Below, one piece after another: positions 4,129 through 30,078 of a DNA stretch of 64,000 nt. A program made the translations under genes and the position numbers. Within the stretch, counting starts at the first letter, position 1. Every line of letters begins with the position of its first letter. The notes beneath the pieces are model-generated. The model saw only the letters and a program-made list of their open reading frames with translations, did not search any database and was not told where the DNA came from. The DNA lies in the sequence record KT895374.1, one strand, 5' to 3'.

Positions 4129-5385
4129 ATGATTAAGTTATTTAATTTAAATAGAATCGGCTTAAGAAAATCTTTTAATAATAATTCTTTAAAAGTTAAA
4201 AAAAGCTTTCTAAAAAAATTTAAAATTATAAATGAAAATAATAGTATAGATCTAATAAAGGATTCATTGTTTAAGATAATGTTAGAAAATAATAGTACAT
4301 ATTTAATACATCATAGCAATAGATTTAATACTATATTAGATGATAATGAAGAATTTCAAAATTATCTAAAAAATAATAACTTCCTAGATCAGTTAAATAG
4401 TACTATTAAGTGTAATAATATATTTTCTATTAATCAAGATACAATAGTTGTAAATATAGATTTTTATATAGAATTAATAATAAATCTAGAATATTTATCA
4501 GATGATACTTTTCTTTCATATGAAAGAGAAAATTCCTTTCAAAGATTAATGAATAGTTTAAAAATTAGAACAAATAATAACTGTCTATTAATTGAGATTT
4601 TAAATTTTTATATTTTTCATGAAATAATTAAAAAATTAATAGACAGTAATTTTAAACTAAATATCGTATCTCTTAATAGGAAAGAATTATTTTTAAGATA
4701 TAATAAATTAATTCTTAGAAAGGATTTATCTGTATTACCATTAAGTAATTTAGTAGATAATTTTGAAAAGTTTGAAGACATGGTAATCAATTATTATCAA
4801 AAGGAAAATAATAATTATGAAATTCAATCAGAATGGGCATTTAAGTTAGAGGAATTTCCTCTAAAGAGTATATACAGCATTAATAGTTTATTTTCAGAGG
4901 TTGCATTTAAATCTCTTAAAGGGAACTATGTAAATCTGTCGAATGATCCATTAATTAAAAATGAATCTGGAATAGAAAAATTTTATCAAAAAATAATTGA
5001 ATCTTTTAAAGAGAGATTATATAATGATGAAATTTACTTTAATAATTCACAAGAAAATGTTTGTCTTCTAAGTTTGATCCATCAATTAGGTACTCATAGT
5101 AAGTCTACAATAGGATATAAAGTAATTGACACTGATAAAGATCTATTTAAGCTTTATTTCTTTAGAACTCTGTTTATGTTTACAATGGAAATGATCTCTT
5201 ATTTTGAAGAAAATAATAGATTAGATAAACTTGATCTAGTAGAGAGAGCTTTAGCTAATGAATATTTTAAATCTTTTATCCAGTATGAAAAGTTTCAAGA
5301 CATTTTTGAAAAAAATAAAAGATTTGAAAACAGTTTTGATAGAGTTAAAAAATATAGAATAGTTAATAAATTAGAAGAAATATAA
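4129..5385 (+). CDS. hypothetical protein, C-tail group 1 (ends RIVNKLEEI)
   Basis: 418-aa N/I/K/F-rich ORF with GGGGG SD. Confidence 0.65.
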   Translation: MIKLFNLNRIGLRKSFNNNSLKVKKSFLKKFKIINENNSIDLIKDSLFKIMLENNSTYLIHHSNRFNTILDDNEEFQNYLKNNNFLDQLNSTIKCNNIFSINQDTIVVNIDFYIELIINLEYLSDDTFLSYERENSFQRLMNSLKIRTNNNCLLIEILNFYIFHEIIKKLIDSNFKLNIVSLNRKELFLRYNKLILRKDLSVLPLSNLVDNFEKFEDMVINYYQKENNNYEIQSEWAFKLEEFPLKSIYSINSLFSEVAFKSLKGNYVNLSNDPLIKNESGIEKFYQKIIESFKERLYNDEIYFNNSQENVCLLSLIHQLGTHSKSTIGYKVIDTDKDLFKLYFFRTLFMFTMEMISYFEENNRLDKLDLVERALANEYFKSFIQYEKFQDIFEKNKRFENSFDRVKKYRIVNKLEEI

Positions 5386-5441
5386 ATAGTAGAAGCTTAT
5401 ACAGTTCTATTATTTTTTTTTTATTTAAAATGAATTTTATC

Positions 5442-5453
5442 TATATATTATTA
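5442..5453 (+). promoter_or_regulatory. putative early promoter motif (ATATATTAT)
   Basis: TATATATTATTA between a terminator and the start of an accessory array; motif recurs at 11568, 15003, 23676, 27353, 39514, 43780, 58624 and 45147 (minus). Confidence 0.55.
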
Positions 5454-5483
5454 AATAGATTGAATGATTGAGGTGATATAATT

Positions 5484-6566
5484 ATGAAAGGAATAGAGAT
5501 AATAGATAATAGTGTTTTAATAAATGATAATTTTATTGATTACCATTTTTTGAATAATTACAATATTATAAGGGATGATATTATATGTAGATCAAAAGAG
5601 ATAGATATTTACAATGAAGAGAATATAAAAAAATATCCCTTATTAAATGTTGAGGTATCAGATATAAAGGATATTTTTAATAAAACTAACCATAAATACA
5701 AATTTGTATTTATGAAGGATGGTGTTTGTTATTTCAATTTAGACTTTTTTGATGGATTTCACATAAATATAAGAAGTGAAATATCTATACATTTGCCAAA
5801 CAGAGGTAATATTCATCGTGTATTAATAGCTTACAAACAATTATACTTATTAATCTTTGTTAATATAATTGAAGAAATGGAAAAAAGTAATATTGATTAT
5901 AATATTACTTTAGTGGGGAAAGATAATAATTTCTTAGTAAGGGAAACAGGTCACTATCAACTATGCATGTTCTATAATTTTATTAAACAACCAATGAGAA
6001 AACTAGTAAAGAAATATTATAAGGATAAAAATCGTAATAAATATGGTTTAAATCATCCTGAAATTGATTTTTTAGATTTTTCAATATTAACTTTAAATAA
6101 TTATACTCATGTTAGTAAAAAAGTAGAATACCTATTTGATATCTATAAAATATCAAATATTGATGAATACATGACAAATAATATCGCAATAGATAAATTT
6201 TTTGATGAGATATTAGAGGATTTAAAGAAAAGACTAGACTTAAATTTGCTGGATTTTGAAAAAGTATATGAAGAATATAAATTGGGAAGTATATTATTTA
6301 ATAATTCAAAACTAATAGCTCATCAAAAAGTTCATTCTTGGGATGTTCGAGACGCTTATGATAGAACTATTGTAAAAGGACTTCTACTATTGATTGAGTA
6401 TTATGAGAAGAATAGAAATCAAAAAGTTGTTGATAGGATTTATGAAATATTAGGTAATGATAGAATTTGGGAGAGTCTTAGTATTGATATAAATAACATA
6501 ATTCATAAAAAAAATTTAAAAAAGGTTGAAAAATTTAGAACCATAAATAAAATGAGGGATCTATAA
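5484..6566 (+). CDS. hypothetical protein, C-tail group 1 (ends RTINKMRDL)
   Basis: 360-aa ORF, GAGGTG SD. Confidence 0.65.
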   Translation: MKGIEIIDNSVLINDNFIDYHFLNNYNIIRDDIICRSKEIDIYNEENIKKYPLLNVEVSDIKDIFNKTNHKYKFVFMKDGVCYFNLDFFDGFHINIRSEISIHLPNRGNIHRVLIAYKQLYLLIFVNIIEEMEKSNIDYNITLVGKDNNFLVRETGHYQLCMFYNFIKQPMRKLVKKYYKDKNRNKYGLNHPEIDFLDFSILTLNNYTHVSKKVEYLFDIYKISNIDEYMTNNIAIDKFFDEILEDLKKRLDLNLLDFEKVYEEYKLGSILFNNSKLIAHQKVHSWDVRDAYDRTIVKGLLLLIEYYEKNRNQKVVDRIYEILGNDRIWESLSIDINNIIHKKNLKKVEKFRTINKMRDL

Positions 6567-7603
6567 TGAATGGCATCTTTATTAACGATGGTATTTTATC
6601 TATTGATGAAAATTGCATTCTTCCAGAAAATAAAAGAAAATTGAATGCAATATTAAAAATTGAGGGATACGAAAGTCTAACCTATGAAGTTAAAGAATTT
6701 AATGAAAACAATAAAAAGTCCAATTATATCACTCTTAAAGATGATAGGTTTATTATATCTTTTCACTATATACATTTTATAGTAAATAAAATAAGTTTAA
6801 GAAGAAGAGATATTCTTAAAGATATAGAAATTCTTCTCAATCTAAATATTTTATCATGTATTAAAGAGCTGGCAAAAAAGAAAATTATTATAGATTACCA
6901 TCAATATACGCCATCAGATATTGTATTAAATGCAAAGACAATAAACTTACTAGATAGTACTTTTGATTGGTTAAAGTATACTATCATTAATGATTATACT
7001 ATTGAAAATATTCAAAAAAGAAATAAAAAAATATTTAGTTGTAGCAAATATATTGATCTGGATTTGTACCGACATGATATAGATATTAGAGAAATTGATT
7101 TAGTAAGTAAAGACCTTGAATTTTTATATAAAGATCATAATTTATTAAATTATAGTATGGCTACTAAGGGTTATGATCTTAATGATAAGTTTTATATACA
7201 TCTAGAAAATTTAATTGAGGATCATAGAAAAAGAATAGAATTTGATGAGGAAATTTATAAATTTTCAACAAGTTACGGTTTTGATTTATTTCTTTATAAA
7301 AATGATAAGTTCTCTATAGCTTCAATTTATAATACAATAATACGAAATAATCATAATCTAGGAGATTTTCTTAAAAATATTATAAGAATATTATTAGGTG
7401 GATATCTAGAAAATATCATAGAATTTCATATAAAGAGAGATAGTTTAGATTTAATGGATGAAACAATTGAAAGATTAGTAGAATTAGAAAATTATGATAG
7501 TGAGAAATTACTTAATCTAGAAAAATATAATATTGATTTATATAAAGATTTTAATGTAATTTTAAATAAAAAAAGAACTATTAGAAATCTAAATAATCTT
7601 TAA
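6566..7603 (+). CDS. hypothetical protein, C-tail group 1 (ends RTIRNLNNL)
   Basis: 345-aa ORF, TAATG coupling; N-terminus MNGIFINDGILSIDEN resembles MKGIEIIDNSVLINDN of the preceding gene. Confidence 0.65.
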   Translation: MNGIFINDGILSIDENCILPENKRKLNAILKIEGYESLTYEVKEFNENNKKSNYITLKDDRFIISFHYIHFIVNKISLRRRDILKDIEILLNLNILSCIKELAKKKIIIDYHQYTPSDIVLNAKTINLLDSTFDWLKYTIINDYTIENIQKRNKKIFSCSKYIDLDLYRHDIDIREIDLVSKDLEFLYKDHNLLNYSMATKGYDLNDKFYIHLENLIEDHRKRIEFDEEIYKFSTSYGFDLFLYKNDKFSIASIYNTIIRNNHNLGDFLKNIIRILLGGYLENIIEFHIKRDSLDLMDETIERLVELENYDSEKLLNLEKYNIDLYKDFNVILNKKRTIRNLNNL

Positions 7604-7615
7604 GGAGATAAAAAT

Positions 7616-8938
7616 TTGAATAATATCTATAGCATTTTAATAAAAGAGGGATTTGGGATAAATTCTTTAAATGAAATTTACATTAATGATTTAGATAGTC
7701 TTCCATATATTGAAGATACTGAGCCAGTTAATGCATTGAAATATAATATCTATATAAATTTAAGAATATTAGAAAGTTTATTAAGAAATAGAAACCATAA
7801 TGATTGTTTAGAAATATTAAACGGTTCAAACACAATCTTTAAATTTGAAGATAATAAAATGGAATTTTTGATGGAAAATGTTTTCATTTTTAAAATTGAA
7901 GAAGAAAAGATTAAAGTGAATCTATTAAATTTAAGTCCTGATGAATTATCATCTGTTGATTTCGATATTAGAGCAAACTTTGTTAGAGTATTTAAAGAAC
8001 TTATTGGTGGTATGATTACCTACACTATTGCGATATTACATCAAATTGAAGAAATATACAATATACGATTAAAATTTGAATTATCTATTAATTCGCTTAA
8101 TCCATCTGATTTTCATAAATATTTTGCTAAATTATTTAATGTAGAAGGAGATATACCGTCATTATATAGAAATGATAAGTATGTAAAATATTCTTTAAAA
8201 ACCTTATCATTACTATATGATAAAAAGAAGTTTTCTAACTACTATCAAGATAGAAGTAATTCCAAAAAAGGTTATGGTATGTTTATACCTAAGAAAGAAT
8301 TAGGTTTAGAGTTGAAAAAACCGTATATGGATATCTTATATGCAAATGCCCAACAAACTAGTGATCAATTTATAAGATATATGAATAATGATTATATTAT
8401 GGAATCTTTGAAATATAATAGAAACTTATATAGTCGAAAAAATATAAAAGATTATTTTCAAAATTATATTGACGATTTAGAGGAAAGAATAAAATCTTTT
8501 GGCATTAAAGGCATAATAACTACTAAGAAAGGAACTCTTCCTAATAATTCTATTATTAAACTTTTACAAAGTTTTAATAATTATATAAAATTAAACAATC
8601 TAAATTATAATAATTTTTATAATGTAGACCATCATTCAGGATTTTATTCCCCACATGAGGGTGAAAAAGAATTTTTAACTGTTAGTTTATATGACTATTT
8701 TCAACTAGAATATCGAAAAGTTATATTTAAAACAATGTTAATTGTTTTAAAAGAACTAAATAAAGAAAAACTCTCTAATTATTCGATAAACTTAGAGAAA
8801 TATTTTCTATTTGCTCGTACACGATCAAATATCATAAAAAATGATTATGAAAGATTATTTTTAAAAGATCCTAAATTTAAAGAGAATATAGAAAATATTA
8901 ACAAACTAATAATTACAAATAAACTGAAAGAGTTATAG
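7616..8938 (+). CDS. hypothetical protein, C-tail group 1 (ends IITNKLKEL)
   Basis: 440-aa ORF, AAGGAG SD, TTG start. Confidence 0.65.
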   Translation: MNNIYSILIKEGFGINSLNEIYINDLDSLPYIEDTEPVNALKYNIYINLRILESLLRNRNHNDCLEILNGSNTIFKFEDNKMEFLMENVFIFKIEEEKIKVNLLNLSPDELSSVDFDIRANFVRVFKELIGGMITYTIAILHQIEEIYNIRLKFELSINSLNPSDFHKYFAKLFNVEGDIPSLYRNDKYVKYSLKTLSLLYDKKKFSNYYQDRSNSKKGYGMFIPKKELGLELKKPYMDILYANAQQTSDQFIRYMNNDYIMESLKYNRNLYSRKNIKDYFQNYIDDLEERIKSFGIKGIITTKKGTLPNNSIIKLLQSFNNYIKLNNLNYNNFYNVDHHSGFYSPHEGEKEFLTVSLYDYFQLEYRKVIFKTMLIVLKELNKEKLSNYSINLEKYFLFARTRSNIIKNDYERLFLKDPKFKENIENINKLIITNKLKEL

Positions 8939-11550: not shown

Positions 11551-11567
11551 ATAAGAAATAAATAAAT

Positions 11568-11580
11568 CTATATTATAAAA
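11568..11580 (+). promoter_or_regulatory. putative early promoter motif
   Basis: CTATATTATAAAA just after terminator and before six-gene array. Confidence 0.5.
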
Positions 11581-11614
11581 AAGATAAAATTATAAAAGGA
11601 GATAAAGGAAATAT

Positions 11615-12352
11615 ATGGACATTCAAGATTATGGTAAGATATTTAAGTATATGTTAGATAATTCTATAAAGGGAGGTCTTATATTTTCAGAAGTTTCAAA
11701 ATGGAAAGAATTTTATGAAAACTCGGAATTATTAGAATTATATAAAGACAAGGTTAATTGGCTGTCAGTAATTAAATATAATGAAGATTTTAATGAAACA
11801 ATGTTAAAAAAATATGAGGATTATGTCTTCACAGATTCTTATTGTGTCGCACATGTTTTTATTGATGAAAGAATTTCTGAAGATTTCTTTAAAGAAAAAC
11901 ATTTTAAAAGTCTAAATAGAGCTATTGATTATAGAATAGTTTTTACAGCGGATTCAAATAGAAGATTTTCTACTAAATTTTTAGAAGAAAATATCGATTT
12001 AATATTTAAGGATACTCCAATAAATAATGTTTCTGATATGAAAGATTTCATTAAAGAGCATAAATTTGAATTGAATATTAATATATTGAAAAAGCTAATA
12101 AAGATAAATCCGAAGATAACCGACATTATAATTAAAATGATAAAAACACTACCAGTAGATTTTCTAGAGGAGATTTTAAAAAGAGCAGGTTCAAAGAGAT
12201 GGGAATTGGTTGCTTTGCATCAAAAGATGGATGAAAAATTTATAATAGAATCACTAAAAAATAATAAATTTAAAATTAAATCAATTAAACTTAATAGACA
12301 AATTGAGAAAACTGACAAAATTAATGCTTTAATTGAGATGGATAGTTTATAA
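11615..12352 (+). CDS. paralog family 2 member (ends NALIEMDSL)
   Basis: shares YGKIFK, YKDKVNW, LPVDFL and W..V..HQKMDEKFI blocks with the next five ORFs. Confidence 0.7.
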   Translation: MDIQDYGKIFKYMLDNSIKGGLIFSEVSKWKEFYENSELLELYKDKVNWLSVIKYNEDFNETMLKKYEDYVFTDSYCVAHVFIDERISEDFFKEKHFKSLNRAIDYRIVFTADSNRRFSTKFLEENIDLIFKDTPINNVSDMKDFIKEHKFELNINILKKLIKINPKITDIIIKMIKTLPVDFLEEILKRAGSKRWELVALHQKMDEKFIIESLKNNKFKIKSIKLNRQIEKTDKINALIEMDSL

Positions 12353-12383
12353 TAAAAAAATAACTGTTAGGTGTTGAATTATT

Positions 12384-13268
12384 ATGATAACAGATTCAGA
12401 ATTAGGAATGTTGTTTAATGAAATTTTAGAAGATACAACAAATTATAATGATGAAATAATTTTAAGAGAGTTATCAAGAAGAAAAAACTTATATGAAAAT
12501 GATAAATTTTTAGAAAGATACGCAGATTTAATCTATTGGGATAAAGTATTAGAAGAATATCAAGATATGCCTATTTCTTTTGTAGAAAAATATAAAAAAT
12601 ATATATTCTCTACAGAAGAAAAAGAAGCTGAAAGACCTCCTCTTCTAATCTCTTTTCAACATAAAAACATCCCTGAAGAATACTTAGAGGAATATTTTGT
12701 TGATGAGAATGGATATATAATTTTTTTAACATTTACCGAACAAAGGGTTTTCAAATTTAGTTCAAAATTTATTGAAAGACATCTAGACCTTATAATCAAA
12801 ATATTAGAGGGCGAATTACCATATAACGGAGGACGTATGAAAGATTTTATAAGACTCTATGGAAATAAATTAACTCAAATTTCAGTTGATAAAATACTTA
12901 GAAAAAGACCAAAACTCTTAAATCAAATTTTAAAATATGTCCATTATCTACCGACAAAATTCCTAGATGAAATCAATAAGACTAGTCTAAGATGGAGTAT
13001 TTTATCAAAAAACCAAAGAATGAATGAAGAATTTATATTAAAAAATATAAAGAATATTGATATCAGTCATTTAATATATAATAGTCATATAGAAAGAAGT
13101 GATCTGATTGTAAGTCTAGAAGAAGAATATATCTTAAAAAATATAGATAATAAAGATTTTAGATATGACTTAATAGAAGGAACTTATAATGATGATCATT
13201 CTATATTATTATATCCTGTACATTTAACTGATAAAGTTAAAGCTATTCTTAAAATGTATGAACTATAG
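12384..13268 (+). CDS. paralog family 2 member (ends KVKAILKMYEL)
   Basis: shared family blocks. Confidence 0.7.
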   Translation: MITDSELGMLFNEILEDTTNYNDEIILRELSRRKNLYENDKFLERYADLIYWDKVLEEYQDMPISFVEKYKKYIFSTEEKEAERPPLLISFQHKNIPEEYLEEYFVDENGYIIFLTFTEQRVFKFSSKFIERHLDLIIKILEGELPYNGGRMKDFIRLYGNKLTQISVDKILRKRPKLLNQILKYVHYLPTKFLDEINKTSLRWSILSKNQRMNEEFILKNIKNIDISHLIYNSHIERSDLIVSLEEEYILKNIDNKDFRYDLIEGTYNDDHSILLYPVHLTDKVKAILKMYEL

Positions 13269-13277
13269 GAGGAAAAA

Positions 13278-14141
13278 ATGATTACTAATGAAGAATGTGG
13301 AGTTCTATTTAAGAAGGTAATAAATAGTGAAGAACTTGAACCTAGAGGAATTATTGATATTCTGTCAAGTAAAAAAGAAATACTTGAAAATGATAAATTT
13401 TTAGAAGAATTTGGCGATAAGCTTTCTTGGAATCAAATATTACATTATAAAAAAGACATCACAAATGAATTTATAGAAAAAAATGAAAAACATATATTTT
13501 CAGGAAATAGTCTTCATCATAATTCTCCTATAAGTATTGCTTTTAAGCATAAAGATATATCTGAAGTTTATTTAGAAAAATATTTTACAATAGAAAATCG
13601 AGAGCCAATTAGAATAGTTTTTGGCAACACTAGGAATGATAAATTTTCAGCTAAATTCATTGAAAGACATATTGATCTTATAATTGACTCTGTAGGGAGT
13701 GGTCTTTTAGGAAATTTTATTCAGCTATATAAAGGTAAGATTACTATAGTCTCATTGGATAGAATAATTAAGAGACGTCCAAGAATTTTACATACAATCT
13801 TAATGTGTGTAAATGATTTACCAGTAGAATTTTTAAATAAAATTAATAAAACTGAGACAAGATGGAGAACTATTGAAAATTTTCAAAGGATGGATGAAGA
13901 ATTTATTTTAAAAAATTTAGAAAAAGGTAAAATTGATATTGATCGTATTATAGTAAATCCTTATATTGAAAGAACAGAAAAAATATTAAAATTAGAAGAA
14001 AAATATATTTTAGAAAATATTAATGTTGAAAAATTTAGACATTACATTAAATCTGGATATAAAGGAGAATTGGAACTTGAGTATCTCCCAATTAAAAGAT
14101 CAGAAAAAGTTAAGAATGTACTTAAAATGTATGAATTGTAG
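13278..14141 (+). CDS. paralog family 2 member (ends KVKNVLKMYEL)
   Basis: shared family blocks; GGAGG SD. Confidence 0.7.
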   Translation: MITNEECGVLFKKVINSEELEPRGIIDILSSKKEILENDKFLEEFGDKLSWNQILHYKKDITNEFIEKNEKHIFSGNSLHHNSPISIAFKHKDISEVYLEKYFTIENREPIRIVFGNTRNDKFSAKFIERHIDLIIDSVGSGLLGNFIQLYKGKITIVSLDRIIKRRPRILHTILMCVNDLPVEFLNKINKTETRWRTIENFQRMDEEFILKNLEKGKIDIDRIIVNPYIERTEKILKLEEKYILENINVEKFRHYIKSGYKGELELEYLPIKRSEKVKNVLKMYEL

Positions 14142-14152
14142 GTGATTCTATA

Positions 14153-15001: not shown

Positions 15002-15002
15002 A

Positions 15003-15018
15003 ATATATATTATAAAAA
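15003..15018 (+). promoter_or_regulatory. putative early promoter motif
   Basis: ATATATATTATAAAAA in intergenic gap. Confidence 0.55.
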
Positions 15019-15054
15019 AGTATATGATATTTCAAGAGGAGGTTTAGAGTTTTA

Positions 15055-15981: not shown

Positions 15982-16001
15982 CTATAGAGGATTGAGAGTT
16001 T

Positions 16002-20224: not shown

Positions 20225-20247
20225 AATAAAAGAGGGGTTGTATTTAA

Positions 20248-20679: not shown

Positions 20680-20710
20680 TAATTAAAATAAGAATGGAGA
20701 TAGACTAATT

Positions 20711-21163
20711 ATGGAATTTTTTACACCTATAAATAATGTTTTTGGCATTAGGATAAATAAATATTTTGGTAGATTTACAGTTTGTGAGTTATATGTTGAG
20801 GGAGAATTAACTGATAAAGAGAATATTCCAGAATGCTTTAAAGAGATATTATTTTTAATTGAAAATTTTAGAGAAAGAGAAAAAGTATTTAATAAGAATA
20901 TTTCAAATGTTAACAGTTATGATAGAAAATATATTTACAATAATAATAAAATAATAAATATTAAAAAGACTTATGATATCATAGAGAAAAAATTAAATGA
21001 AGAATATTCTCATATTGATGGTCTATATTTGATAGAATTTAATAGAGAAGTTTATTTCAATGACTTTAGTCGCTATAAATTAAGATTTGTCACATCAAGA
21101 GAAAATGAAATTTACAAAGAAACGGAAAGATTAATAACTAGGGCTAAATTGGAGGAATTATAG
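20711..21163 (+). CDS. paralog family 3 member (ends ITRAKLEEL)
   Basis: shared blocks IPECFKEIL, TYDIIEKK, LIEFNRE, ETERLIT. Confidence 0.7.
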   Translation: MEFFTPINNVFGIRINKYFGRFTVCELYVEGELTDKENIPECFKEILFLIENFREREKVFNKNISNVNSYDRKYIYNNNKIINIKKTYDIIEKKLNEEYSHIDGLYLIEFNREVYFNDFSRYKLRFVTSRENEIYKETERLITRAKLEEL

Positions 21164-21573
21164 TGAATTTTTTATTTAAAGAAATAGATTCTAATAATAA
21201 AGTTTTATTTATTTTTAAGATTAGTAAAGAGTTGCGAGACTTTTCCAAATTTCCAAAACCCTATAATATAATATTTTCTTCAATATATAAAAGACAACAA
21301 AATCTTCATAATATTCTTTTAAAAGGAGCTACAGTAAGAGGAATTGAAATATGGGAAAATCTTATTGAAACTTTTTACAGAGATCTGGAAAGAGTTATAA
21401 ACAAAGAATTTTCAAATGAAAAAGACTTGCTTTCAATAAGTTTTAAAAATGAAGATAATTCCCATATCGTTAATTTTGGAGAATATACTATTTGTTTTAA
21501 TTTTAATAAAGAAAATAGTATTACAAAAGAAACCAGAGACTTTATAACTAAATTAAAATTGGGGGAACTATAA
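21163..21573 (+). CDS. paralog family 3 member (ends ITKLKLGEL)
   Basis: shared blocks; TAGTG coupling. Confidence 0.7.
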   Translation: MNFLFKEIDSNNKVLFIFKISKELRDFSKFPKPYNIIFSSIYKRQQNLHNILLKGATVRGIEIWENLIETFYRDLERVINKEFSNEKDLLSISFKNEDNSHIVNFGEYTICFNFNKENSITKETRDFITKLKLGEL

Positions 21574-21574
21574 C

Positions 21575-21982
21575 ATGAATAAGTTTTTTTCAATTAAGAA
21601 AATAAAAGAATTTGGGAATAACGTAGTTTATAGCATTTATGTAAATAGGGTTGATTTTGATAAACTATCAGAACTTTCTGGTTTTTATAAAATGGTTTTC
21701 TCAATCCTAGAAAGGGAGAGAAAAGATTTTGAATCCAATAGAAAATTAAGTTCAAAAAATCGCATTGATGTAACCGAAGTAAGGAAAACTTATAAATCGA
21801 TTGAAAATATATTAGACGTTACTCTTTCGCATAATGATGGTCTTGAATTAATAGAGTTTAGTGAAACCATGCCCCTCTCAGGCTTTGATTTCTATTCAAT
21901 ACGTCTTGTATTTCATAGAGAAAGTCTAATTGCTATGGAAACTAGGGATTTAATAACCAAATTAAAATTGGAGGAAATATAA
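21575..21982 (+). CDS. paralog family 3 member (ends ITKLKLEEI)
   Basis: shared blocks. Confidence 0.7.
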   Translation: MNKFFSIKKIKEFGNNVVYSIYVNRVDFDKLSELSGFYKMVFSILERERKDFESNRKLSSKNRIDVTEVRKTYKSIENILDVTLSHNDGLELIEFSETMPLSGFDFYSIRLVFHRESLIAMETRDLITKLKLEEI

Positions 21983-21983
21983 T

Positions 21984-22406
21984 ATGTGTAGTAAATTGTT
22001 AATTGAAAAAATAGAAGAATCTGAAGTGGAAATTGCTTATATTTTTGAAATAAGCAATATAATTAATTTCAAAATACTATCAGAATTCTATAAACCATTT
22101 TTCCAATTAATTGATAAATATAGAAGTAATTATCGAGAACATTATGGAAATTATACATATGACTTTAATGATGATGAATTTTTCTTTATTTATAAAATAT
22201 ATAATAAGTTATTTGATAAGATTGAAAAAGAGATTTATAAAAGGTTTGTAAGTAATAATACAGGTATAAAATCAATAAAATTTATGAGACGTGAGACTGA
22301 TATAACATTCTTTTCCTATAGCTTGATATTTAGATTTCATAGTAATAGTCCGTTAATTAAAGAAACTGAAAGATTAATAACACTATATAAGTTAGGAGAG
22401 ATATAA
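21984..22406 (+). CDS. paralog family 3 member (ends ITLYKLGEI)
   Basis: shared blocks. Confidence 0.7.
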   Translation: MCSKLLIEKIEESEVEIAYIFEISNIINFKILSEFYKPFFQLIDKYRSNYREHYGNYTYDFNDDEFFFIYKIYNKLFDKIEKEIYKRFVSNNTGIKSIKFMRRETDITFFSYSLIFRFHSNSPLIKETERLITLYKLGEI

Positions 22407-22407
22407 T

Positions 22408-22818
22408 ATGCGTTATAATCATCTTAATTTTTCAATCGAAAAGTTAAAAATATTTAAAGGTAAAGAATTATTTATTTTTAATATGTATCGCAGAGTGGAC
22501 TTAGAATATTTTCCAAATTTTTATAAAAATATATTTAATTTAATAAAAGGCTATCAGGAAAGATTCGATAAATATTTATATGAGGAAACTGAAATACATG
22601 GTGATATCGAAGATGCAATTTTTGATGAAATTTGTAAAGTATATGATGAAATTGAAAGGAAGATAAATCATTCTTCTGATATCCTAATAGAATTTGATAG
22701 AAAGCGTGTAGATATTTCATTTAGTACCTATAGTCTAAAATTTACCTTTAATGAGAATGATCCATCTATACAAGAAATAGATAAGCTTATAATTTTAAAT
22801 AAATTGGGGGAAATATAA
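22408..22818 (+). CDS. paralog family 3 member (ends IILNKLGEI)
   Basis: shared blocks. Confidence 0.7.
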   Translation: MRYNHLNFSIEKLKIFKGKELFIFNMYRRVDLEYFPNFYKNIFNLIKGYQERFDKYLYEETEIHGDIEDAIFDEICKVYDEIERKINHSSDILIEFDRKRVDISFSTYSLKFTFNENDPSIQEIDKLIILNKLGEI

Positions 22819-23220
22819 ATGCGTAATTCTTTTTCAGTTAAAAAGAAAAAAGAATTTGGCGAATATGTAGTGTATAAATTCTATGTAGATAAGATTAATC
22901 TAGAAAAACTCCCAGTCTTTTATAAAGAAGTATTTTCAATTATAGAAGAGAGTCGAAAAAATTTTAATTATGTTGATGAATATAGTTATTTTATTGAAAC
23001 TAATAAAGGGGATAATATAAGAGAAACTTATGATCTAATTGAAAATAAAATAACTGATAGGTTTTCTAAAGATAAAGACTTATGCTTGATTGAGATGGAT
23101 CGGGAAATGATACATGTTGATTTTAGTTATTATAAAGTACTTTTTATATTTAATAAGAGAAATCCAATCGTTTCAGAAACTGATAGGTTAATAACCAGAT
23201 TAAAATTAAAGGATATTTGA
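22819..23220 (+). CDS. paralog family 3 member (ends ITRLKLKDI)
   Basis: shared blocks. Confidence 0.7.
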   Translation: MRNSFSVKKKKEFGEYVVYKFYVDKINLEKLPVFYKEVFSIIEESRKNFNYVDEYSYFIETNKGDNIRETYDLIENKITDRFSKDKDLCLIEMDREMIHVDFSYYKVLFIFNKRNPIVSETDRLITRLKLKDI

Positions 23221-23223
23221 TAT

Positions 23224-23655
23224 ATGAGAGTAAATAATGGGCGCAATCTTATAAATAACTCTTATAAAATTAGTAATTATTTTATTTGTCAATTCGGTAA
23301 TCTATATAAACCTTTATGGTCAGAAGGTATATATTTGGATCAGATAACGGAGAATAAATTCTTTCCTTTTGGTTATGAAATAAAGAAAGAATATCAAAAA
23401 TGTATAATAGAAAATTGTACACAGATAGATTGTATTGAAAGAATAAATAATCTATTAAATTCAAAAAGAAAAGAATTTCTAAAGAAAGGTATTGTATCTA
23501 TTCAATTAGATTATATATCAGAACAAATAAGAGAAAAATCAAAAGATAAACAAATTAGTTTTGTTCTTACATTAATATATGAAGCTAATAGAAATAATAA
23601 GTATTATGTTGAACTAAAGAAACAAATGACAAAATATAAATTAGAAAGACTGTAG
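23224..23655 (+). CDS. diverged family 3-like protein (ends MTKYKLERL)
   Basis: similar size and C-terminal tail. Confidence 0.6.
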   Translation: MRVNNGRNLINNSYKISNYFICQFGNLYKPLWSEGIYLDQITENKFFPFGYEIKKEYQKCIIENCTQIDCIERINNLLNSKRKEFLKKGIVSIQLDYISEQIREKSKDKQISFVLTLIYEANRNNKYYVELKKQMTKYKLERL

Positions 23656-23675: not shown

Positions 23676-23690
23676 AAATATATATTATAG
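23676..23690 (+). promoter_or_regulatory. putative early promoter motif
   Basis: AAATATATATTATAG in intergenic gap. Confidence 0.55.
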
Positions 23691-23729
23691 AATTGATAAA
23701 TAAAAATCAAGACTATAATATAATTAAAG

Positions 23730-23924
23730 GTGGAATTTAAAATGAAAAGCACTTATAAGAATTTCTTTATGATTTTAGGAGTTATCTTTGCACTAATGAT
23801 TAGTTTTAGAATGGTGATATTTTTAATTAAATCTCCTATTGTTTTGATTATTATTATTTTAGTAGTTTTATACTTTATTGGTAAGGGTAAGGATATTAAA
23901 AGTGGTAAAAGGAAAAGAGTATGA
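23730..23924 (+). CDS. small two-TM membrane protein with basic C-tail
   Basis: two hydrophobic segments; KGKDIKSGKRKRV tail. Confidence 0.6.
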   Translation: MEFKMKSTYKNFFMILGVIFALMISFRMVIFLIKSPIVLIIIILVVLYFIGKGKDIKSGKRKRV

Positions 23925-24289
23925 TGGGAGGTCAAAAAGTTTCTGTATGTACAGAAGAATACAATGAATACAATATTATTGTAAGAAGTCTAGGCGATTT
24001 TATTAATAGTAAAGATACTTCTATAAAGTTGATTCCTTTTAGAGATCTTATTCTATCAATATTTAATAAATATCCAGATAGATTAAGAGATTTGTCAATT
24101 CGTAATTTTGATATATTTCAAGGAATGGTAAATAGAGATCTTGATGGAAAAATGGAAATTTATATAACGCCATCCGATGAACCCCAATTCATGGATCTTT
24201 GCATAAGTATAAACCAGAGCAGATTAACTGATAAAGAAATTAATGATATCTTGAATTTTAAGACATTATTGAAATTGGGAGAGTTGTAA
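23921..24289 (+). CDS. paralog family 3b member (ends KTLLKLGEL)
   Basis: EEYNEYNII..IPFRDLIL blocks shared with the next two ORFs. Confidence 0.65.
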   Translation: MMGGQKVSVCTEEYNEYNIIVRSLGDFINSKDTSIKLIPFRDLILSIFNKYPDRLRDLSIRNFDIFQGMVNRDLDGKMEIYITPSDEPQFMDLCISINQSRLTDKEINDILNFKTLLKLGEL

Positions 24290-24292
24290 ATA

Positions 24293-24692
24293 ATGGGGAA
24301 AACTTATAATAGTGTTAAAATTTTATTTGATGAATCTGAAGAGTATTATGATTTATTGGTGAAAGATATAGAATATTTCTTTAATATTAAAGAATATGGT
24401 GAAGAAAATCTTATTCGAGAAATTCCCTTCCGAAATGACATATTATTTGTGTTTAATCTTTTCCCATATGCACGTATGGAATTAGATTATTGTCAATATG
24501 CAGATCTTCAAACTTGTGTAAATAAAGAACTTCAGAATAGACATCATGAAAAAATATCAGTGAAAATAGGTCCAAACAGTTATAATTTTTCATTAGCTCT
24601 AAAGATTCGTTATTATAAAAAAAAATTTAGCCGTAGAAGACCATGATGAAATTAAAAAATTTATGACATCTCTTAACCTATCATCATTATAA
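24293..24692 (+). pseudogene. family 3b member frameshifted at an A9 run (24617-24625)
   Basis: as written stops at 24646 (KKKFSRRRP); removing one A extends it to KKNLAVEDHDEIKKFMTSLNLSSL-stop at 24692, family-like tail, immediately before the next SD. Confidence 0.65.
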
Positions 24693-24712: not shown

Positions 24713-25093
24713 ATGGAAAGTTTATCAGTGAATGAAAATGAAGATTATTATTCTATCTTTTATGATAATTTTATATCATTAATGGTTAACGATAATAAAA
24801 GTATGCACAAGATTTTCCCTTTTAGAGATCGATTATTAAAAGGTTTTGAACTAGCTAATAAAAAAATGGAAGAGGGTAGGAGTGTAGTTAGTATAGATAC
24901 TTTTTATGAGATAGCACTTAATAAGTCTCTAAGAGATGATAAAGTATCTAATAAAATTAGGGTTGCTTTGTCCCCTACAGTATTATCTAGAAATATAATT
25001 ATAACTGTATTTATTGATAGGAAAAATTTAGAAGAAGATGAGTTGGAGACTATCAATAGATTTAAAAGTATTACATATTTAGAAAAAATCTAA
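24713..25093 (+). CDS. paralog family 3b member (ends KSITYLEKI)
   Basis: NEDYYSIF..FPFRDRLL blocks; AAGGAG SD. Confidence 0.65.
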   Translation: MESLSVNENEDYYSIFYDNFISLMVNDNKSMHKIFPFRDRLLKGFELANKKMEEGRSVVSIDTFYEIALNKSLRDDKVSNKIRVALSPTVLSRNIIITVFIDRKNLEEDELETINRFKSITYLEKI

Positions 25094-27321: not shown

Positions 27322-27333
27322 TAATATGATGTT
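27322..27333 (-). promoter_or_regulatory. putative late (nvRNAP) promoter AACA-N6-TA
   Basis: reverse complement reads AACA-TCATAT-TA, ~27 nt upstream of start at 27295. Confidence 0.55.
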
Positions 27334-27352
27334 CAAAATAATTATAAAGTTA

Positions 27353-27367
27353 GATATATATTATAAA
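27353..27367 (+). promoter_or_regulatory. putative early promoter motif
   Basis: GATATATATTATAAA ahead of the Trp-repeat array. Confidence 0.55.
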
Positions 27368-27378
27368 TAAAATCTAAT

Positions 27379-27828
27379 ATGATAGTAGGTGCTATTAAAT
27401 TGGTAAAGAAATATTTTGACCTTACAATAGAGAAACATATTGAGGAAAAGGGTATTGATCAGGTAGATTGGGATGAAATAGTATTTTTTAAGCTATCAGA
27501 GGAATTTATAGAAAAATATGCTGACAATTTTAACTGGTCTATGATTTTAAAATATCAAAGAGTTTCAGAAGAATTTGTTGATAGAAACAAAGACAGAATT
27601 AAAAGAACTGGGTGGAGGTATTTTTCTATGAAGGAGTTTCTAACTGAAGATTTCATAAGGAGAAACTTTTCTAATCTTGACAAACATGCTATATCAATCT
27701 GTCAAAAATTGTCAGAAAAATTTATAATTGATCATTATGAATTTTTAGATTTTGAATATCTCCAACAAAATGAACATGTTCAGATTACTGATAGAATAAA
27801 AACTCTATTTAGTCTAAAGGAGATATAG
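27379..27828 (+). CDS. 23-aa Trp-repeat protein (ends TLFSLKEI)
   Basis: W..I...Q.LSEEFI repeats. Confidence 0.75.
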   Translation: MIVGAIKLVKKYFDLTIEKHIEEKGIDQVDWDEIVFFKLSEEFIEKYADNFNWSMILKYQRVSEEFVDRNKDRIKRTGWRYFSMKEFLTEDFIRRNFSNLDKHAISICQKLSEKFIIDHYEFLDFEYLQQNEHVQITDRIKTLFSLKEI

Positions 27829-27833
27829 AATAT

Positions 27834-28391
27834 ATGAGTATTAAAATGAAGTCTAAACAAGAAAGATTCCTAGATTATATGAATTTCAGAGTATTTAAAA
27901 ATCAAAGTGAATTAGAAGAAAGAATAGAAAAAAAGGGAAAGAGGTCTGTTAATTGGGATTCCGTATCATCTGACAGTAAATTATTTTTAAGTGAATCATT
28001 CATAGAAGAGTATATCGATGATTTAAATATGATTAAGATTTCAAAAAATCAGACTTTAAGTAAAGATTTTATTGATAAATACAAGCATAAAATGAATATA
28101 TTTGCTTTAAATAATTTAGTTATGTACCAAAAAGTATCAGAAGATTTTTTAAGAAGTTATGCTTTTTCATTAAATTGGGAATATGTGTCGGAGTGTCAAA
28201 AGCTATCAGAGACTTTTATAGAAGAGTTTCATGATTTAGTTGATTGGTGTCGTATAGGTGAAAATCAAAAATTATCTGAAGAATTCCTAATTAAACACAT
28301 GAGTAGATTATCTCTAAAAGATTTAGAAGAAAACCCAAACATTACCTTAAGTGAAAAAATAAAAATCCTCTTTAAAATTAGTGAGGTTTAG
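27834..28391 (+). CDS. 23-aa Trp-repeat protein (ends ILFKISEV)
   Basis: W..V...QKLSE.FI repeats. Confidence 0.75.
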   Translation: MSIKMKSKQERFLDYMNFRVFKNQSELEERIEKKGKRSVNWDSVSSDSKLFLSESFIEEYIDDLNMIKISKNQTLSKDFIDKYKHKMNIFALNNLVMYQKVSEDFLRSYAFSLNWEYVSECQKLSETFIEEFHDLVDWCRIGENQKLSEEFLIKHMSRLSLKDLEENPNITLSEKIKILFKISEV

Positions 28392-28393
28392 TT

Positions 28394-28954
28394 ATGAGCA
28401 AGTTTGAAAATGAAATTTATATAGAGGAAAAAGTTAAAAATGGTAGTATGAGTACATTTCATTGGATGGATATTTCAATCTATCAAAAACTGTCAGAAGA
28501 ATTCATTGAAAAATATGCAGATAAATTAGATTGGTTGTCCATTAGTCAGTATCAGGTATTGTCGGAAAAATTTATTGAAAGATATACTGATAAATTAAAT
28601 TGGATAAATATTTGTCGACATCAAAAGTTATCTGAAAAATTCATGCAAAAACATAGAGATAAAATAAACTGGAGTTTAATATGCATGCATCAAAAGTTAT
28701 CTGAAGAATTCATAGATCGACATAGTGAAGTATTCAATTGGAGATTAATTTCTGAATATCAAAAACTGTCAGAAGAATTCATTTTAAAAAATCATGATAA
28801 AGTTAACTGGGTTTATTTATCTATTAAACAGAAACTTTCTGAAAAATTTATATTTGATCACATAGATAAACTAGATATTGGTCTCCTATCAGATAATCCA
28901 AATATTGAAAAAACTGAAAAATTAAAAACATTATTTAAATTAGGAGAATTATAA
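28394..28954 (+). CDS. 23-aa Trp-repeat protein, six clean repeats (ends TLFKLGEL)
   Basis: WxxISxYQKLSEEFIEKYADKLD unit x6. Confidence 0.8.
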   Translation: MSKFENEIYIEEKVKNGSMSTFHWMDISIYQKLSEEFIEKYADKLDWLSISQYQVLSEKFIERYTDKLNWINICRHQKLSEKFMQKHRDKINWSLICMHQKLSEEFIDRHSEVFNWRLISEYQKLSEEFILKNHDKVNWVYLSIKQKLSEKFIFDHIDKLDIGLLSDNPNIEKTEKLKTLFKLGEL

Positions 28955-28957
28955 ACT

Positions 28958-29461
28958 ATGAATGATAATTATATACTAATGGAAAATATTAAAAAGCGTA
29001 TAGAAGAAAATGGTTTTGAATCAACCAATTGGGATACAATTCTTTCACAATATAGCAAATTAGAACCTATTATTGAATTGTATATAGAAAAATTTAATAA
29101 AAGTCATTGGATTTTAATTTCAGGAGGACAAGACTTATCCGAAAAATTTATAGAAAAATATAAAGATAAAATAGAGTGGACGAGGTTTTCCCAATTTAGT
29201 ATTTTAGATGAATCTATAATTGAAAAATATTGCGATTTAGTTGATTGGTGGTGCATATCTACCTATCAAAATTTATCTGAAGAATTTATTAAAAAATATT
29301 TTAATAAGCTTGATGTAAGAGGAATTTCATACCATCAAAATTTATCTGAAGAATTTATTATTAATAATATTGATAAATTAGATATTAATATGTTAAAACT
29401 AAATCCTTTAATAGATATTACTAATAAGGTAGATACAATTTTTAAACTCAAGGAGATTTGA
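28958..29461 (+). CDS. 23-aa Trp-repeat protein (ends TIFKLKEI)
   Basis: repeats; 27-nt DNA duplication 69 nt apart (29265 and 29334). Confidence 0.75.
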   Translation: MNDNYILMENIKKRIEENGFESTNWDTILSQYSKLEPIIELYIEKFNKSHWILISGGQDLSEKFIEKYKDKIEWTRFSQFSILDESIIEKYCDLVDWWCISTYQNLSEEFIKKYFNKLDVRGISYHQNLSEEFIINNIDKLDINMLKLNPLIDITNKVDTIFKLKEI

Positions 29462-30078
29462 TTATGAATGATGATGCTAAAGTAGAAAGACTAGTTAATA
29501 GTGTTAAAGATCAGGGATGGATAGTTGCCCCTTTGTTTTACAATCTATCCGAGGAATTTATTGAAAAAAATAAAGACAAATTGGATTGGAAATCAGTATG
29601 TCAATATCAAAGGTTATCAGAGTCCTTTATAGAAAATCATTTAGAATATATTGTGTGGGATTTGATAGTTAAGTACCAAAATTTATCAGAATCTTTTATG
29701 GAAAAGTATGCAAGTTTTTTAAATTGGGAATACGTTGTTAAATATCAAACGATATCAGAATCTTTTATGGAAAAAAATCGTCACATGTTAGATTGGGATG
29801 ATATTGTTCGTTATTGTGATTTATCAGAAAAATTTATGAGTCGAAATAGTAATGAATTTGACTGGGATTTAATTGTTAGACACCAAAATCTTTCAGAACT
29901 CTTTATGGAAAATAATTCCGAATTGATTGATTGGAGCTTAGTTGGTAGATGTCAAGAGATATCAGAAGAGTTCATAATTAAAAATATTGAAAAATTAGAT
30001 ATTGATTCATTAGAATCAAATTACAATGCTGTTATAACAGAAAAAATAGAAACTATATTCAAACTTAAAGATTTATAA
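29458..30078 (+). CDS. 23-aa Trp-repeat protein (ends TIFKLKDL)
   Basis: W..IV+YQ.LSE.FME repeats. Confidence 0.8.
   Translation: MIMNDDAKVERLVNSVKDQGWIVAPLFYNLSEEFIEKNKDKLDWKSVCQYQRLSESFIENHLEYIVWDLIVKYQNLSESFMEKYASFLNWEYVVKYQTISESFMEKNRHMLDWDDIVRYCDLSEKFMSRNSNEFDWDLIVRHQNLSELFMENNSELIDWSLVGRCQEISEEFIIKNIEKLDIDSLESNYNAVITEKIETIFKLKDL

Follow-up and report, generated by a model that had tools for sequence, protein, structure and literature searches.

The window analysed here is a stretch of 64,000 nucleotides, bases 62001-126000 of KT895374.1, from Bacillus phage vB_BpuM-BpSp (BpSp), an AR9/PBS1-like jumbo phage. Coordinates are those of the window unless the record is named, and all features listed lie on the + strand. 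About one fifth of BpSp genes share one short C-terminal helix; they belong to six or more early-gene families whose bodies are unrelated. No description of this shared tail was found in the literature searched, in agreement with the initial annotation, which knew of none.

The first tailed array, group 1 (gp088-gp091, 4129..8938; phrog_13583), consists of four ORFs of 345-440 aa, at 4129-5385, 5484-6566, 6566-7603 and 7616-8938, each with the tail. Trp-repeat units are absent, and comparison of the bodies with those of the other tailed families detected no homology. Upstream, at 1..2594, lie a gene for an AAA ATPase, truncated at the window start, and one for a metallopeptidase fused to a VWA-like domain (Pfam: AAA_5, weak; DUF2201_N, DUF2201 and VWA), so that the MoxR-VWA pair proposed initially as a partner of the tail is present as a MoxR-type AAA gene and a metallopeptidase-VWA gene. 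The gene order matches that of AR9 (g028, g029, then g030 onward). The AR9 homologues of group 1, g030, g031 and g034-g036, have tails of equal length, and conservation covers the last ~100 residues and reaches further by tblastn.

Two arrays encode solenoid proteins. Family 2 (gp099-gp104, 11615..16925) comprises six ORFs of 245-308 aa, divergent Trp-repeat solenoids with the tail, which match phrog_3532 over their full length and keep one to three repeat units per protein. The Trp-repeat array (gp123-gp127, 27379..30078) comprises five ORFs of 149-206 aa, also of phrog_3532, in which three to seven units of 23 residues are followed by the tail. These two had been annotated as separate families, a division that does not hold: with a hhalign probability of 97.2% between their bodies and the same PHROG, they form one alpha-solenoid superfamily.

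Family 3 (gp107-gp115, 19796..23655; phrog_13736) has nine tailed ORFs of 133-150 aa. When 1.84 billion representative proteins were searched, no relatives were found besides the nine paralogues themselves, and by this search it is apparently an orphan, known from BpSp alone. Family 3b is represented by gp117 (23921..24289; 122 aa, tail score 6.0), which has no match in Pfam or PHROG and whose body resembles that of gp118 only. The latter (24293..24646), a gp117 paralogue by BLAST, lacks the tail (end score -19.7); near its 3' end a tail-like 14-mer lies in another frame with a stop directly after it, and gp118 is a copy broken by a single frameshift. The next gene, gp119 (24713..25093; 126 aa), has a weak tail variant, listed as such initially too, with an end score of -2.0, below threshold, and is doubtful as a tail bearer. 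Far downstream, the array gp165-gp169 (61333..63976, record 123333) has five ORFs of 160-184 aa with a tail variant carrying Leu at -6 and -3, and runs on beyond the window as gp171-gp173; neither repeat units nor body homology to other tailed families was found in it. In body-only profile comparisons, probabilities were at most 1.4% for group 1, family 3 and 3b and at most 6% for the array at record 131730. Thus, as far as sequence comparison reaches, group 1, family 3, 3b and the arrays at record 123333 and 131730 appear to have unrelated bodies.

Most of these arrays had been placed behind an early-type promoter, and matches to the AR9 early promoter consensus, which includes a G after six further bases (PMC5312081), bear this out. 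Upstream of the AAA ATPase gene, at record position 61673, a perfect match heads the whole group 1 run, within which a weaker match with two mismatches (5439..5458) lies upstream of gp089. Others are located 45 nt upstream of the family 2 array (11564..11583; one mismatch, the G after six bases included), between genes of that array upstream of gp103, 48 nt before the next start (15001..15020; perfect), upstream of gp116-gp119 (23676..23695; perfect), 21 nt upstream of the Trp-repeat array (27352..27371; one mismatch) and at the head of the run containing a ligase gene and the 61333-63976 array (58624..58643; perfect). Among the detected virion proteins there was no product of a tailed gene.

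Frequency and anatomy of the C-terminal module

How common is the ending? In 4129-30078, 40 ORFs were called without overlap, and 19 of them end strictly in K-[LM]-x-[ED]-[ILV]-stop, as against 0 of the 47 other ORFs of the window. Once the weaker endings listed in the initial annotation are added, the set amounts to 26 ORFs (four of group 1, six of family 2, nine of family 3, two of 3b and five of the Trp-repeat array). Its count of about 27 tagged proteins in this range is therefore nearly matched, while its five-residue motif, its range limits and its separation of family 2 from the Trp-repeat family need revision. Across the BpSp genome the strict ending occurs in 26 of 323 ORFs against 0.2-0.3 expected: 0.16 from the internal frequency of the motif (38 in 75,792 positions; binomial P ~2e-48, a value inflated by paralogy), 0.23 from C-terminal composition and a mean of 0.27, with a maximum of 3, when the last 15 residues were shuffled in 2000 rounds. 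Looser versions end ~68 ORFs genome-wide, always on the + strand, in 61333-63976 and five other genome regions as well as in 4129-30078. A motif-free test counted pairs of proteins with BLAST-unrelated bodies whose last 14 residues are similar at BLOSUM62 >= 25, with the 14-mer 41-54 residues from the end as control; it gave 114 pairs versus 5 in BpSp, 10 versus 2 in LPJP1 and 1 versus 2 in AR9, where there is thus no cross-family signal. A shared ending on dissimilar proteins is therefore real, and its confinement to the C-terminus is confirmed by a profile search with the last 22 residues, which found essentially zero true internal copies.

What was called a 'tag' is a conserved module spanning the last ~26 residues, in which an amphipathic helix of 11-15 residues comes after a turn and extends to the carboxyl end. 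The short turn often holds Asn and Pro. Thirteen residues from the end, Thr, Asp or Ser, the classical helix N-cap residues, occupies 83% of solenoid tails, with acidic residues next to it. Positions shared across families are Thr at -8 (50-78%), Lys/Arg at -5 (~60-100%), Leu/Met at -4 and a hydrophobic last residue, the first two recurrent in all families. In 9 of 10 families, conservation is higher in the tail than in the body (in the 61333-63976 family, identity is 0.51 versus 0.20), and the protein end nearly always coincides with the motif. On a matrix built from solenoid tails only, the tails of the 61333-63976 array score 4.3-16.1 and those of group 1 score 3.3 to 11.2, as against -7.7 to 6.9 in AR9 (4 versus 6 sequences); the BpSp group 1 values rank at least in the top 1% of other C-termini.

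In every member of the Trp-repeat array, and in most other solenoid members with detectable units, 26-27 residues separate the last repeat unit from the stop. In 5 of the 6 family 2 proteins, a second, internal tail-like segment lies ~50 residues before the end, as seen in the alignment and the profile search. An AlphaFold model of 28394-28954 (mean pLDDT 96.1) consists of helices 6-7 residues long, with the tail forming a helix at 175-185 (pLDDT 95-98); a solved structural relative of the 23-residue Trp-containing repeat was not found. In phage G and Listeria phage LPJP1, the Trp-repeat proteins have a comparable end helix at a fixed distance past the last repeat, whereas homologues from metagenomes and an E. 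coli jumbo phage have other C-terminal domains in its place. The native setting of the module is the Trp-repeat alpha-solenoid family, in its Firmicute jumbo-phage branch. Besides the solenoids, five or more BpSp early-gene families whose bodies are unrelated end in it.

The model of 21984-22406, a family 3 member, is of a different kind, strand-strand-helix-helix-strand-strand-helix, with the tail as helix 124-138 (pLDDT 86, pTM 0.80; the tail helix falls from 93 to 77, the value of the last ten residues), and independent public models of four paralogues superpose on it over their full length (TM 0.66-0.88). Despite the difference in predicted fold, one family 3 tail agrees with one solenoid tail at 11 of its last 20 residues. 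The claim that the tail sits on dissimilar bodies is thereby upheld, since body homology is undetectable and folds differ where modelled. Against a tag, the initial annotation had weighed one fold shared by all families with the tail as an integral packing helix; the confident helix is seen in both models, the single common fold is not.

Protein-level selection and the Shine-Dalgarno overlay

The tail codons often carry the Shine-Dalgarno (SD) sequence of the next gene. A GGAG-type purine core 6-12 nt before the next start falls within the last four codons at 15 of 17 junctions spaced <= 6 nt, compared with 2 of 52 others, and Glu/Asp stands at -2 in 14 of 17 such tails versus 15 of 52. In family 3, the next start follows within ~3 nt at seven junctions, with the SD inside the tail codons. 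Leu at -4 is encoded by TTG in 9 of 19 cases (1.5 expected). Much of Glu/Asp at -2 and of Gly/Glu/Lys at -3 is due to this overlap, so the initial view that SD overlap does not explain the tail fully is true of the core but allowed SD too small a share.

Could the 3' ends be conserved purely as nucleic acid, as the translation-initiation region of the next gene or as an RNA structure? Tight gene spacing does go strongly with an SD core within the last four codons, and Leu at -4 uses TTG more often than expected. However, [KR]-[LM]-x-x-hydrophobic-stop is kept where the overlap is absent: with the next gene far or missing, Lys/Arg at -5, Leu/Met/Ile at -4 (66 of 69) and a hydrophobic last residue (67 of 69) remain. 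Separate SDs are present downstream of the stops at 13268, 15981 and 16925, as had been annotated, and no gene starts within 59-98 nt of the stops at 5385 and 30078, where the annotated 'terminators' are weak hairpins with T runs, below scan criteria. The conserved stretch reaches at least 20 residues upstream of any SD, and no conserved RNA pairing was found at 11 junctions. Synonymous codons vary as elsewhere in the genome, codon identity at identical residues being 0.56 within families (0.53 expected from codon usage) and 0.54 between unrelated ones (0.52 expected), as expected if conservation is of amino acids rather than DNA. The tail is therefore kept by selection on the protein, and a nucleic-acid feature as sole cause, contradicted by persistence without an SD, codon variation and upstream conservation, is very improbable.

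Role of the tail helix and comparison with known systems

The best reading, which we hold with slightly better than even confidence, is a conserved structural cap helix with an SD overlay. In solenoids, the tail helix would close the hydrophobic face of the last repeat; its burial is suggested by the model confidence values. In families 3 and 3b and the arrays at record 123333 and 131730, all orphans, new bodies may have arisen within head-to-tail early arrays while the resident 3' end was kept, an event whose DNA trace would be gone, and the new fold would then have retained the helix for packing. Group 1 would have an ancestral terminal helix of its own, common to AR9, that resembles the pattern. 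A cap helix agrees with the C-terminal-only position, the fixed repeat-to-stop distance, the confident models of both folds, the N-cap residues, the comparable helix in phage G and LPJP1, and codon usage at expectation. Several observations fit it less well. Polar Thr at -8 and Lys/Arg at -5 recur, though mere packing on unrelated bodies need not keep them; the tail outconserves the body in most families and proteins nearly always stop at the motif; BpSp group 1 tails are nearer the solenoid pattern than those of AR9, in which tblastn gave no Trp-repeat match; and confidence drops over the last ten residues of the family 3 model.

Some of these observations would also suit a docking tag, the initial proposal, in which Thr(-8), Lys(-5), Leu/Met(-4) and the last residue with its free carboxylate form a common surface for one hub, feeding variable bodies into one pathway. 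The hub might be a host or phage protease, chaperone or adaptor, for example the AAA and VWA-metallopeptidase pair, whose genes lie directly 5' of group 1 in both BpSp and AR9, or the tails of other members. In favour of a common partner are the conserved polar positions on unrelated bodies and the group 1 tails, which in BpSp approach the pattern more closely than those of AR9 do, a comparison of only 4 with 6 sequences. Such a tag is also in line with the tail being most families' most conserved segment, the strict protein end, the sharing across families that is strong in BpSp and absent in AR9, the early-promoter runs and the absence of the products from detected virion proteins; on a helical-wheel reading, the positions of highest share (-8, -4, -1) would lie on another face than the family-specific hydrophobics. 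On the other hand, the solenoid tail is modelled with very high confidence as an ordered helix rather than a free peptide, SD overlap accounts for part of the pentapeptide, and helix capping for several conserved polar columns. A docking tag is thus a serious but rather unlikely alternative to the cap helix.

It is improbable that all tailed proteins form one very divergent superfamily of a single fold, with the tail as its slowest-evolving part and neither transfer nor convergence needed. Divergence is a continuum within the solenoids, some arrays retaining one detectable unit in ~230 residues, and several arrays are linked at hhalign probabilities of only 20-80%; but family 3 is modelled as alpha/beta with four strands while the solenoid is all-alpha, group 1 is conserved with AR9 despite the missing Trp-repeat match there, and the body-only probabilities are low. 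A membrane-targeting helix of the MinD/FtsA kind, taking early proteins to the cell membrane, would suit the C-terminal position of the helix, its amphipathic character, its Lys residues and its hydrophobic face, but membrane-targeting helices are usually unstructured in solution and on a flexible linker, whereas the tail directly follows the body with pLDDT above 90 and has a broad hydrophobic arc, as in buried helices, so that this role is highly unlikely.

Among known systems, translational coupling through an SD in the upstream 3' end is matched by the tightly spaced junctions, but accounts for -3, -2 and the TTG at -4 only and leaves the 20-residue helix and its persistence at array ends unexplained. 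The ssrA tag read by ClpXP and the nonpolar C-termini read by the PDZ domains of tail-specific proteases share the strict C-terminal position, hydrophobic last residue and free carboxylate; these signals are short and unstructured, whereas the BpSp end is part of a confidently modelled helix. Poxvirus ankyrin-repeat/PRANC (F-box-like) proteins are likewise large multigene families of big viruses, in which the alpha-helical repeat body varies and the very C-terminus carries a short, conserved helical element, a likeness by analogy, not homology. Pfam gave no ankyrin or PRANC/F-box match in BpSp tailed proteins, whose repeat is the Trp-containing 23-residue unit, whose module is ~26 rather than ~50 residues and also ends non-repeat bodies, and whose host has no SCF ligase.

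Family 2 and the Trp-repeat array belong to the multi-copy 'tryptophan repeat gene family' (phrog_3532), which BpSp has in common with the jumbo phages G and LPJP1. Their relatives in phage G and LPJP1 also have an amphipathic helix after the last repeat, in a version that differs per phage. In the comparison of BpSp, LPJP1 and AR9, sharing of the tail with unrelated families is strong in BpSp only, with a weak excess in LPJP1 and none in AR9. The capping ('solvating') helices of TPR and ankyrin proteins resemble the tail in standing at the array end only, a fixed distance past the last repeat, and in being longer and more amphipathic than the repeat helices. Such caps are normally specific to their repeat family, whereas the BpSp cap sequence also ends an alpha/beta family and several repeat-less ones.

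Extent and anatomy of the shared ending

The window is 100% identical to Bacillus phage vB_BpuM-BpSp (KT895374.1), its first base being base 62001 of the record. The BpSp genome (255,569 bp; genus Takahashivirus, AR9/PBS1 group) was called as 323 non-overlapping ORFs, and all genes of the initial finding are annotated in the record as 'hypothetical' or 'tryptophan repeat gene family protein'. The initial annotation had claimed a common C-terminal tail on the accessory proteins encoded between positions 4129 and 30078 of the window and its absence from the core and virion genes of the window. The strict form of this ending, K-[LM]-x-[ED]-[ILV]-stop, terminates 19 of the 40 ORFs in that interval (26 ORFs if the weaker endings named in that annotation are counted) and was found in none of the remaining ORFs of the window. 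Genome-wide it closes 26/323 ORFs, against 0.16 expected from its internal frequency, 0.23 from end composition and 0.27 on average in shuffled ends (maximum 3 in 2000). Because paralogy inflates the P values of motif counts, a motif-free test was added: among pairs with BLAST-unrelated bodies, the last 14 residues are alike in 114 pairs, compared with 5 for a control segment. The same test gave 1 versus 2 in AR9 (first 148 kb) and 10 versus 2 in the Listeria phage LPJP1. The shared ending is real, and the shuffle and composition expectations together with the pair test rule out chance or composition as its source.

Full-length hhalign between families is unable to score a 20-residue match; the best alignment of family 3 (gp107-gp115) with the Trp-repeat alpha-solenoid superfamily (phrog_3532) places tail on tail, with a P of only 0.026. 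For this reason a position matrix was trained on one superfamily, using the 45 solenoid tails only, and tested on the others, taking the 99.5th percentile of internal 14-mers as cut-off. It was passed by 41/45 solenoid proteins (leave-one-out) and, against an expectation of 1.3, by 27 of 261 non-solenoid ORFs; the 68 positive ORFs lie on the + strand without exception. The 27 comprise group 1 (gp088-gp091) and family 3 in full, gp117, eight ORFs of the array that starts at window 61333 (record 123333-128107), three further ORFs at record 131730-134151, and two singletons. Tail-like ends are also seen on the single-copy proteins gp074 (99 aa, record 55271-55570) and gp079 (400 aa, record 59285-60487), which have neither paralogues nor a family match.

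Counted column by column in each family, the conserved stretch exceeds five residues. Numbering back from the last residue, position -1 is hydrophobic in 98-100% of the members of every family (67/69 tails overall) and position -4 is Leu, Met or Ile in 98-100%, while at position -5 Lys reaches 60% in the solenoids and Lys or Arg 75-100% in the other families. The share of Thr at -8 is 62% in the solenoids, 78% in family 3, 75% in the window 61333 array and 50% in group 1. Farther upstream, -10 is hydrophobic in 75-100% in four of the five tabulated families, -13 holds Thr, Asp or Ser in 83% of the solenoids and Thr in 67% of family 3, and Asn and Pro are common from -20 to -17. Tail conservation exceeds body conservation in 9/10 families, and matches to a 22-residue profile of the ending are almost confined to C-termini, the exception being a duplicated tail in family 2 (gp099-gp104). 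Five proteins of this family (window 12384-16925) have a second, internal tail-like segment about 50 residues upstream of the end, and gp099 (11615-12352) terminates at the first tail-like copy, which suggests a tandem duplication of the module.

Bodies, relatives and early expression

When the last 25 residues were omitted, BLAST placed family 2 and the Trp-repeat array (gp123-gp127, 27379-30078) in a single cluster with 25 further ORFs. Body-only hhalign relates family 2 to the Trp-repeat array at 97.2%, and both match phrog_3532. The hallmark of this family is present in each, namely a tandemly repeated unit of about 23 residues with a near-invariant Trp, a Gln and a Leu-Ser-Glu-x-Phe core; such units recur in genome arrays at record 36760-49516, 139538-141525 and 180850-188148. 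From the last unit to the stop there are 26-27 residues in the Trp-repeat array and in most members with detectable units. Group 1, family 3, 3b (to which gp117 belongs) and the two arrays starting at record 123333 and 131730 contain no Trp-repeat unit. The claim that the tail is carried by dissimilar families stands for these groups, including the two arrays that were not part of it, but not for family 2 and the Trp-repeat array, which are homologous.

Group 1 corresponds to phrog_13583 and family 3 to phrog_13736. Among 1.84 billion representative proteins, family 3 has no relatives except its nine paralogues, and group 1 homologues were found by database searches in AR9/PBS1-like phages only (AR9 g030, g031 and g034-g036, plus a g033 fragment). 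The terminal helix of the AR9 proteins equals that of BpSp in length and differs in residues at -5, -8 and -9. AR9 g033 (L009 27020-27190), a 56-residue ORF immediately downstream of an annotated early promoter, aligns with AR9 group 1 proteins over their final ~55 residues, including the tail. None of the bodies was named by Pfam, NCBIfam, PDB sequence search or Foldseek against PDB and BFVD.

Trp-repeat proteins of phage G and LPJP1 likewise have a terminal amphipathic helix at a fixed distance past the last repeat, with a phage-specific ending; since LPJP1 has just 8 Trp-repeat proteins and its cross-family excess is small, it is a weak test of such a phage 'dialect'. In 1580 sampled database homologues and an E. 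coli Asteriusvirus member, other C-terminal domains (e.g., DUF7666) take the tail's place, and a Clostridium botulinum phage is among the matches. More than 1500 metagenomic proteins share the 23-residue repeat, fused to a beta-rich C-terminal domain or DUF7666 instead of the tail.

Several further features were observed. The head-to-tail array at window 61333-63976 (to record 128107), missing from the initial set, has eight paralogous members, of which five fall within the window, with bodies lacking any match and a tail version of its own with Leu at -6 and -3. The gp117 paralogue gp118 (24293-24646) ends in a basic stretch and has no tail; near its 3′ end a tail-like segment followed by a stop lies in a different reading frame, which suggests one frameshift, real or due to sequencing error. 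In AR9, gyrase A is annotated as joined from three pieces; gp105 (window 16952-17167) has 59% identity to the first exon, the downstream piece lies at 17573-19741, and BpSp gyrA thus appears to be split by about 405 nt, a gap in which no Rfam intron was matched. The stretch around the gene pieces for the RNA polymerase beta subunit has two group I introns (Rfam RF00028, 82-83 bits), at window 54789-55039 and 56154-56425.

The early-promoter consensus of AR9 consists of 13 bases, then six bases, then G (PMC5312081). With 0-1 mismatch it occurs at 45 sites in BpSp, 32 of them intergenic. Sites of this kind stand at the start of the gene runs that include group 1, 3b, the Trp-repeat array and the window 61333 array, of the run in which family 3 follows downstream of family 2, and of the runs with three out of four further solenoid arrays that were examined. 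This agrees with the early placement of the tagged arrays proposed at the outset. The 9-base core alone is not enriched in this AT-rich window (12 found, 11.8 expected), and only the full 13-base motif in an intergenic position is informative. The AR9 group 1 homologues likewise lie downstream of annotated early promoters. Of the 23 proteins listed in the published virion proteome of BpSp (PMC4870245), none bears the tail. The major virion structural protein gene is also preceded by an early-promoter-like motif (window 33744-33763, one mismatch); it deviates at the same single base as the motif before AR9 g057, which was inactive according to the AR9 transcription paper.

Codon usage and the overlay of Shine-Dalgarno sequences

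Synonymous codon choice at the four conserved positions in strict tails is roughly that of the whole genome, except for Leu at -4, which is encoded by TTG in 9/19 cases (1.5 expected). Where residues are identical, codon identity is 0.56 versus 0.53 expected within families and 0.54 versus 0.52 between unrelated families. As codon sharing is what codon usage predicts, the similarity is held at the amino-acid level, and the synonymous variation that had been proposed as a check indicates protein-level selection. Recent gene conversion of the 3′ ends is rejected on the same figures.

How much of the motif belongs to the next gene? A Shine-Dalgarno (SD) sequence was regarded as coupled when a purine-rich core lay 5-12 nt upstream of the next start and depended on gene spacing. 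A GGAG-type core lies within the last four codons of 15/17 tails whose next start is at most 6 nt away, compared with 2/52 others (P = 3e-11), and Glu/Asp at -2 follows the same division (14/17 versus 15/52, P = 1.5e-4). Lys/Arg at -5 shows a mild dependence only (16/17 versus 35/52, P = 0.03), and positions -4 and -1 are independent of spacing. The SD embedded in the upstream gene explains only part of the motif, in line with the initial annotation, which had also placed terminators after 5385 and 30078; a terminator scan confirmed neither.

Readings of the tail and comparison with known systems

The Trp-repeat protein at window 28394-28954, modeled from a 41-sequence alignment (mean pLDDT 96.1, pTM 0.85), is predicted to be an all-alpha solenoid of 15 regularly alternating helices, mostly of 6-7 residues. 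Its tail forms helix 175-185 (pLDDT 95-98), longer than the repeat helices. The family 3 member at 21984-22406, modeled from nine paralogues (mean pLDDT 86.2, pTM 0.80), has the order strand-strand-helix-helix-strand-strand-helix, the tail being helix 124-138, with pLDDT dropping from 93 to 77. The chain ends in a helix in both, at pLDDT 95 and 77, respectively. Foldseek found no PDB match for either model, PDB sequence search likewise gave no solved relative of the solenoid, and BFVD matches to the family 3 model were full-length paralogue models only. Judged from pLDDT only, the tail helix may be buried on the body.

The best-supported reading, which we consider somewhat more probable than its negation, is that the tail is a structural cap-helix module. 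This module is native to the phage solenoid family and also occurs on other early families, to which it probably passed with 3′ ends that stayed in place as new bodies arose in the arrays. Protein-level selection maintains it, and the SD of the next gene overlies its final codons.

The chief alternative is the docking tag of the initial annotation, by which variable bodies would be plugged into one common partner. The polar positions are conserved, the tail is the most conserved segment and the proteins end strictly at the motif; in addition, the solenoid-pattern score is higher in BpSp group 1 tails (3.3 to 11.2) than in those of AR9 (-7.7 to 6.9). However, no evidence of a partner was obtained and the helix is ordered and confidently predicted, so we regard docking as possible but doubtful. 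Rather unlikely is a phage-wide C-terminal address, by which about 68 early proteins of at least six unrelated families would present the same helix face to one hub and evolve in concert. The face (Thr at -8, Lys at -5, Leu/Met at -4 and the hydrophobic carboxyl end) would be exposed, candidates for the hub would include the conserved pair of AAA and VWA-metallopeptidase proteins and, on the host side, a protease or chaperone, and the variable binding bodies would form a library feeding a single pathway; group 1 tails would drift to the common pattern only in the phage with a large solenoid family. That all bodies belong to one hidden superfamily is improbable: body-only profile comparison with solenoids or with each other gave at most 1.4% for group 1, family 3 and 3b, and at most 6% for the record 131730 array. 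A purely nucleic-acid cause is very improbable, no conserved RNA pairing being found among 11 gene junctions, and a membrane-targeting helix is just as hard to credit, as no low-confidence linker precedes the helix in the solenoid or family 3 model.

The shared ending was supposed to be undescribed, and no description was found in the literature searched on BpSp, AR9 (other than its genome paper), phage G and Staphylococcus relatives or in a 2026 review. Jumbo phages have large early-gene blocks without known function. In BpSp about one-fifth of the genes form a single class recognizable by the last 14-26 residues, including families without relatives anywhere, which provides a handle for sorting jumbo-phage 'dark matter' and a worked example of overlapping translation signals shaping protein C-termini in tightly packed arrays. 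It also poses a concrete structural question, whether the conserved helix face is buried, as in an ordinary cap, or exposed, as a common docking system would have it; the latter, if true, would be the first modular system of variable body plus common terminal adaptor described in phage.

Among known systems, the poxvirus ankyrin/PRANC families resemble the tail proteins by analogy only, none of their defining features being present: in ten tail-bearing proteins Ank, PRANC and F-box gave no Pfam match at E ≤ 0.1 and no NCBIfam match. A phage-wide address would be the bacterial-virus counterpart of the poxvirus ankyrin/F-box arrangement. Degrons of the ssrA type or read by PDZ domains are unstructured peptides with a nonpolar end; the BpSp tails have a hydrophobic last residue in 67/69 cases, and their end is modeled as a helix. 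Helices of the MinD/FtsA type are amphipathic, unpacked and preceded by a flexible linker, whereas the BpSp models have no low-confidence linker. The arrangement works most like the C-terminal capping helix of a repeat protein, with which it shares a fixed place after the last repeat, occurrence at the array end only and a length exceeding that of the repeat helices.
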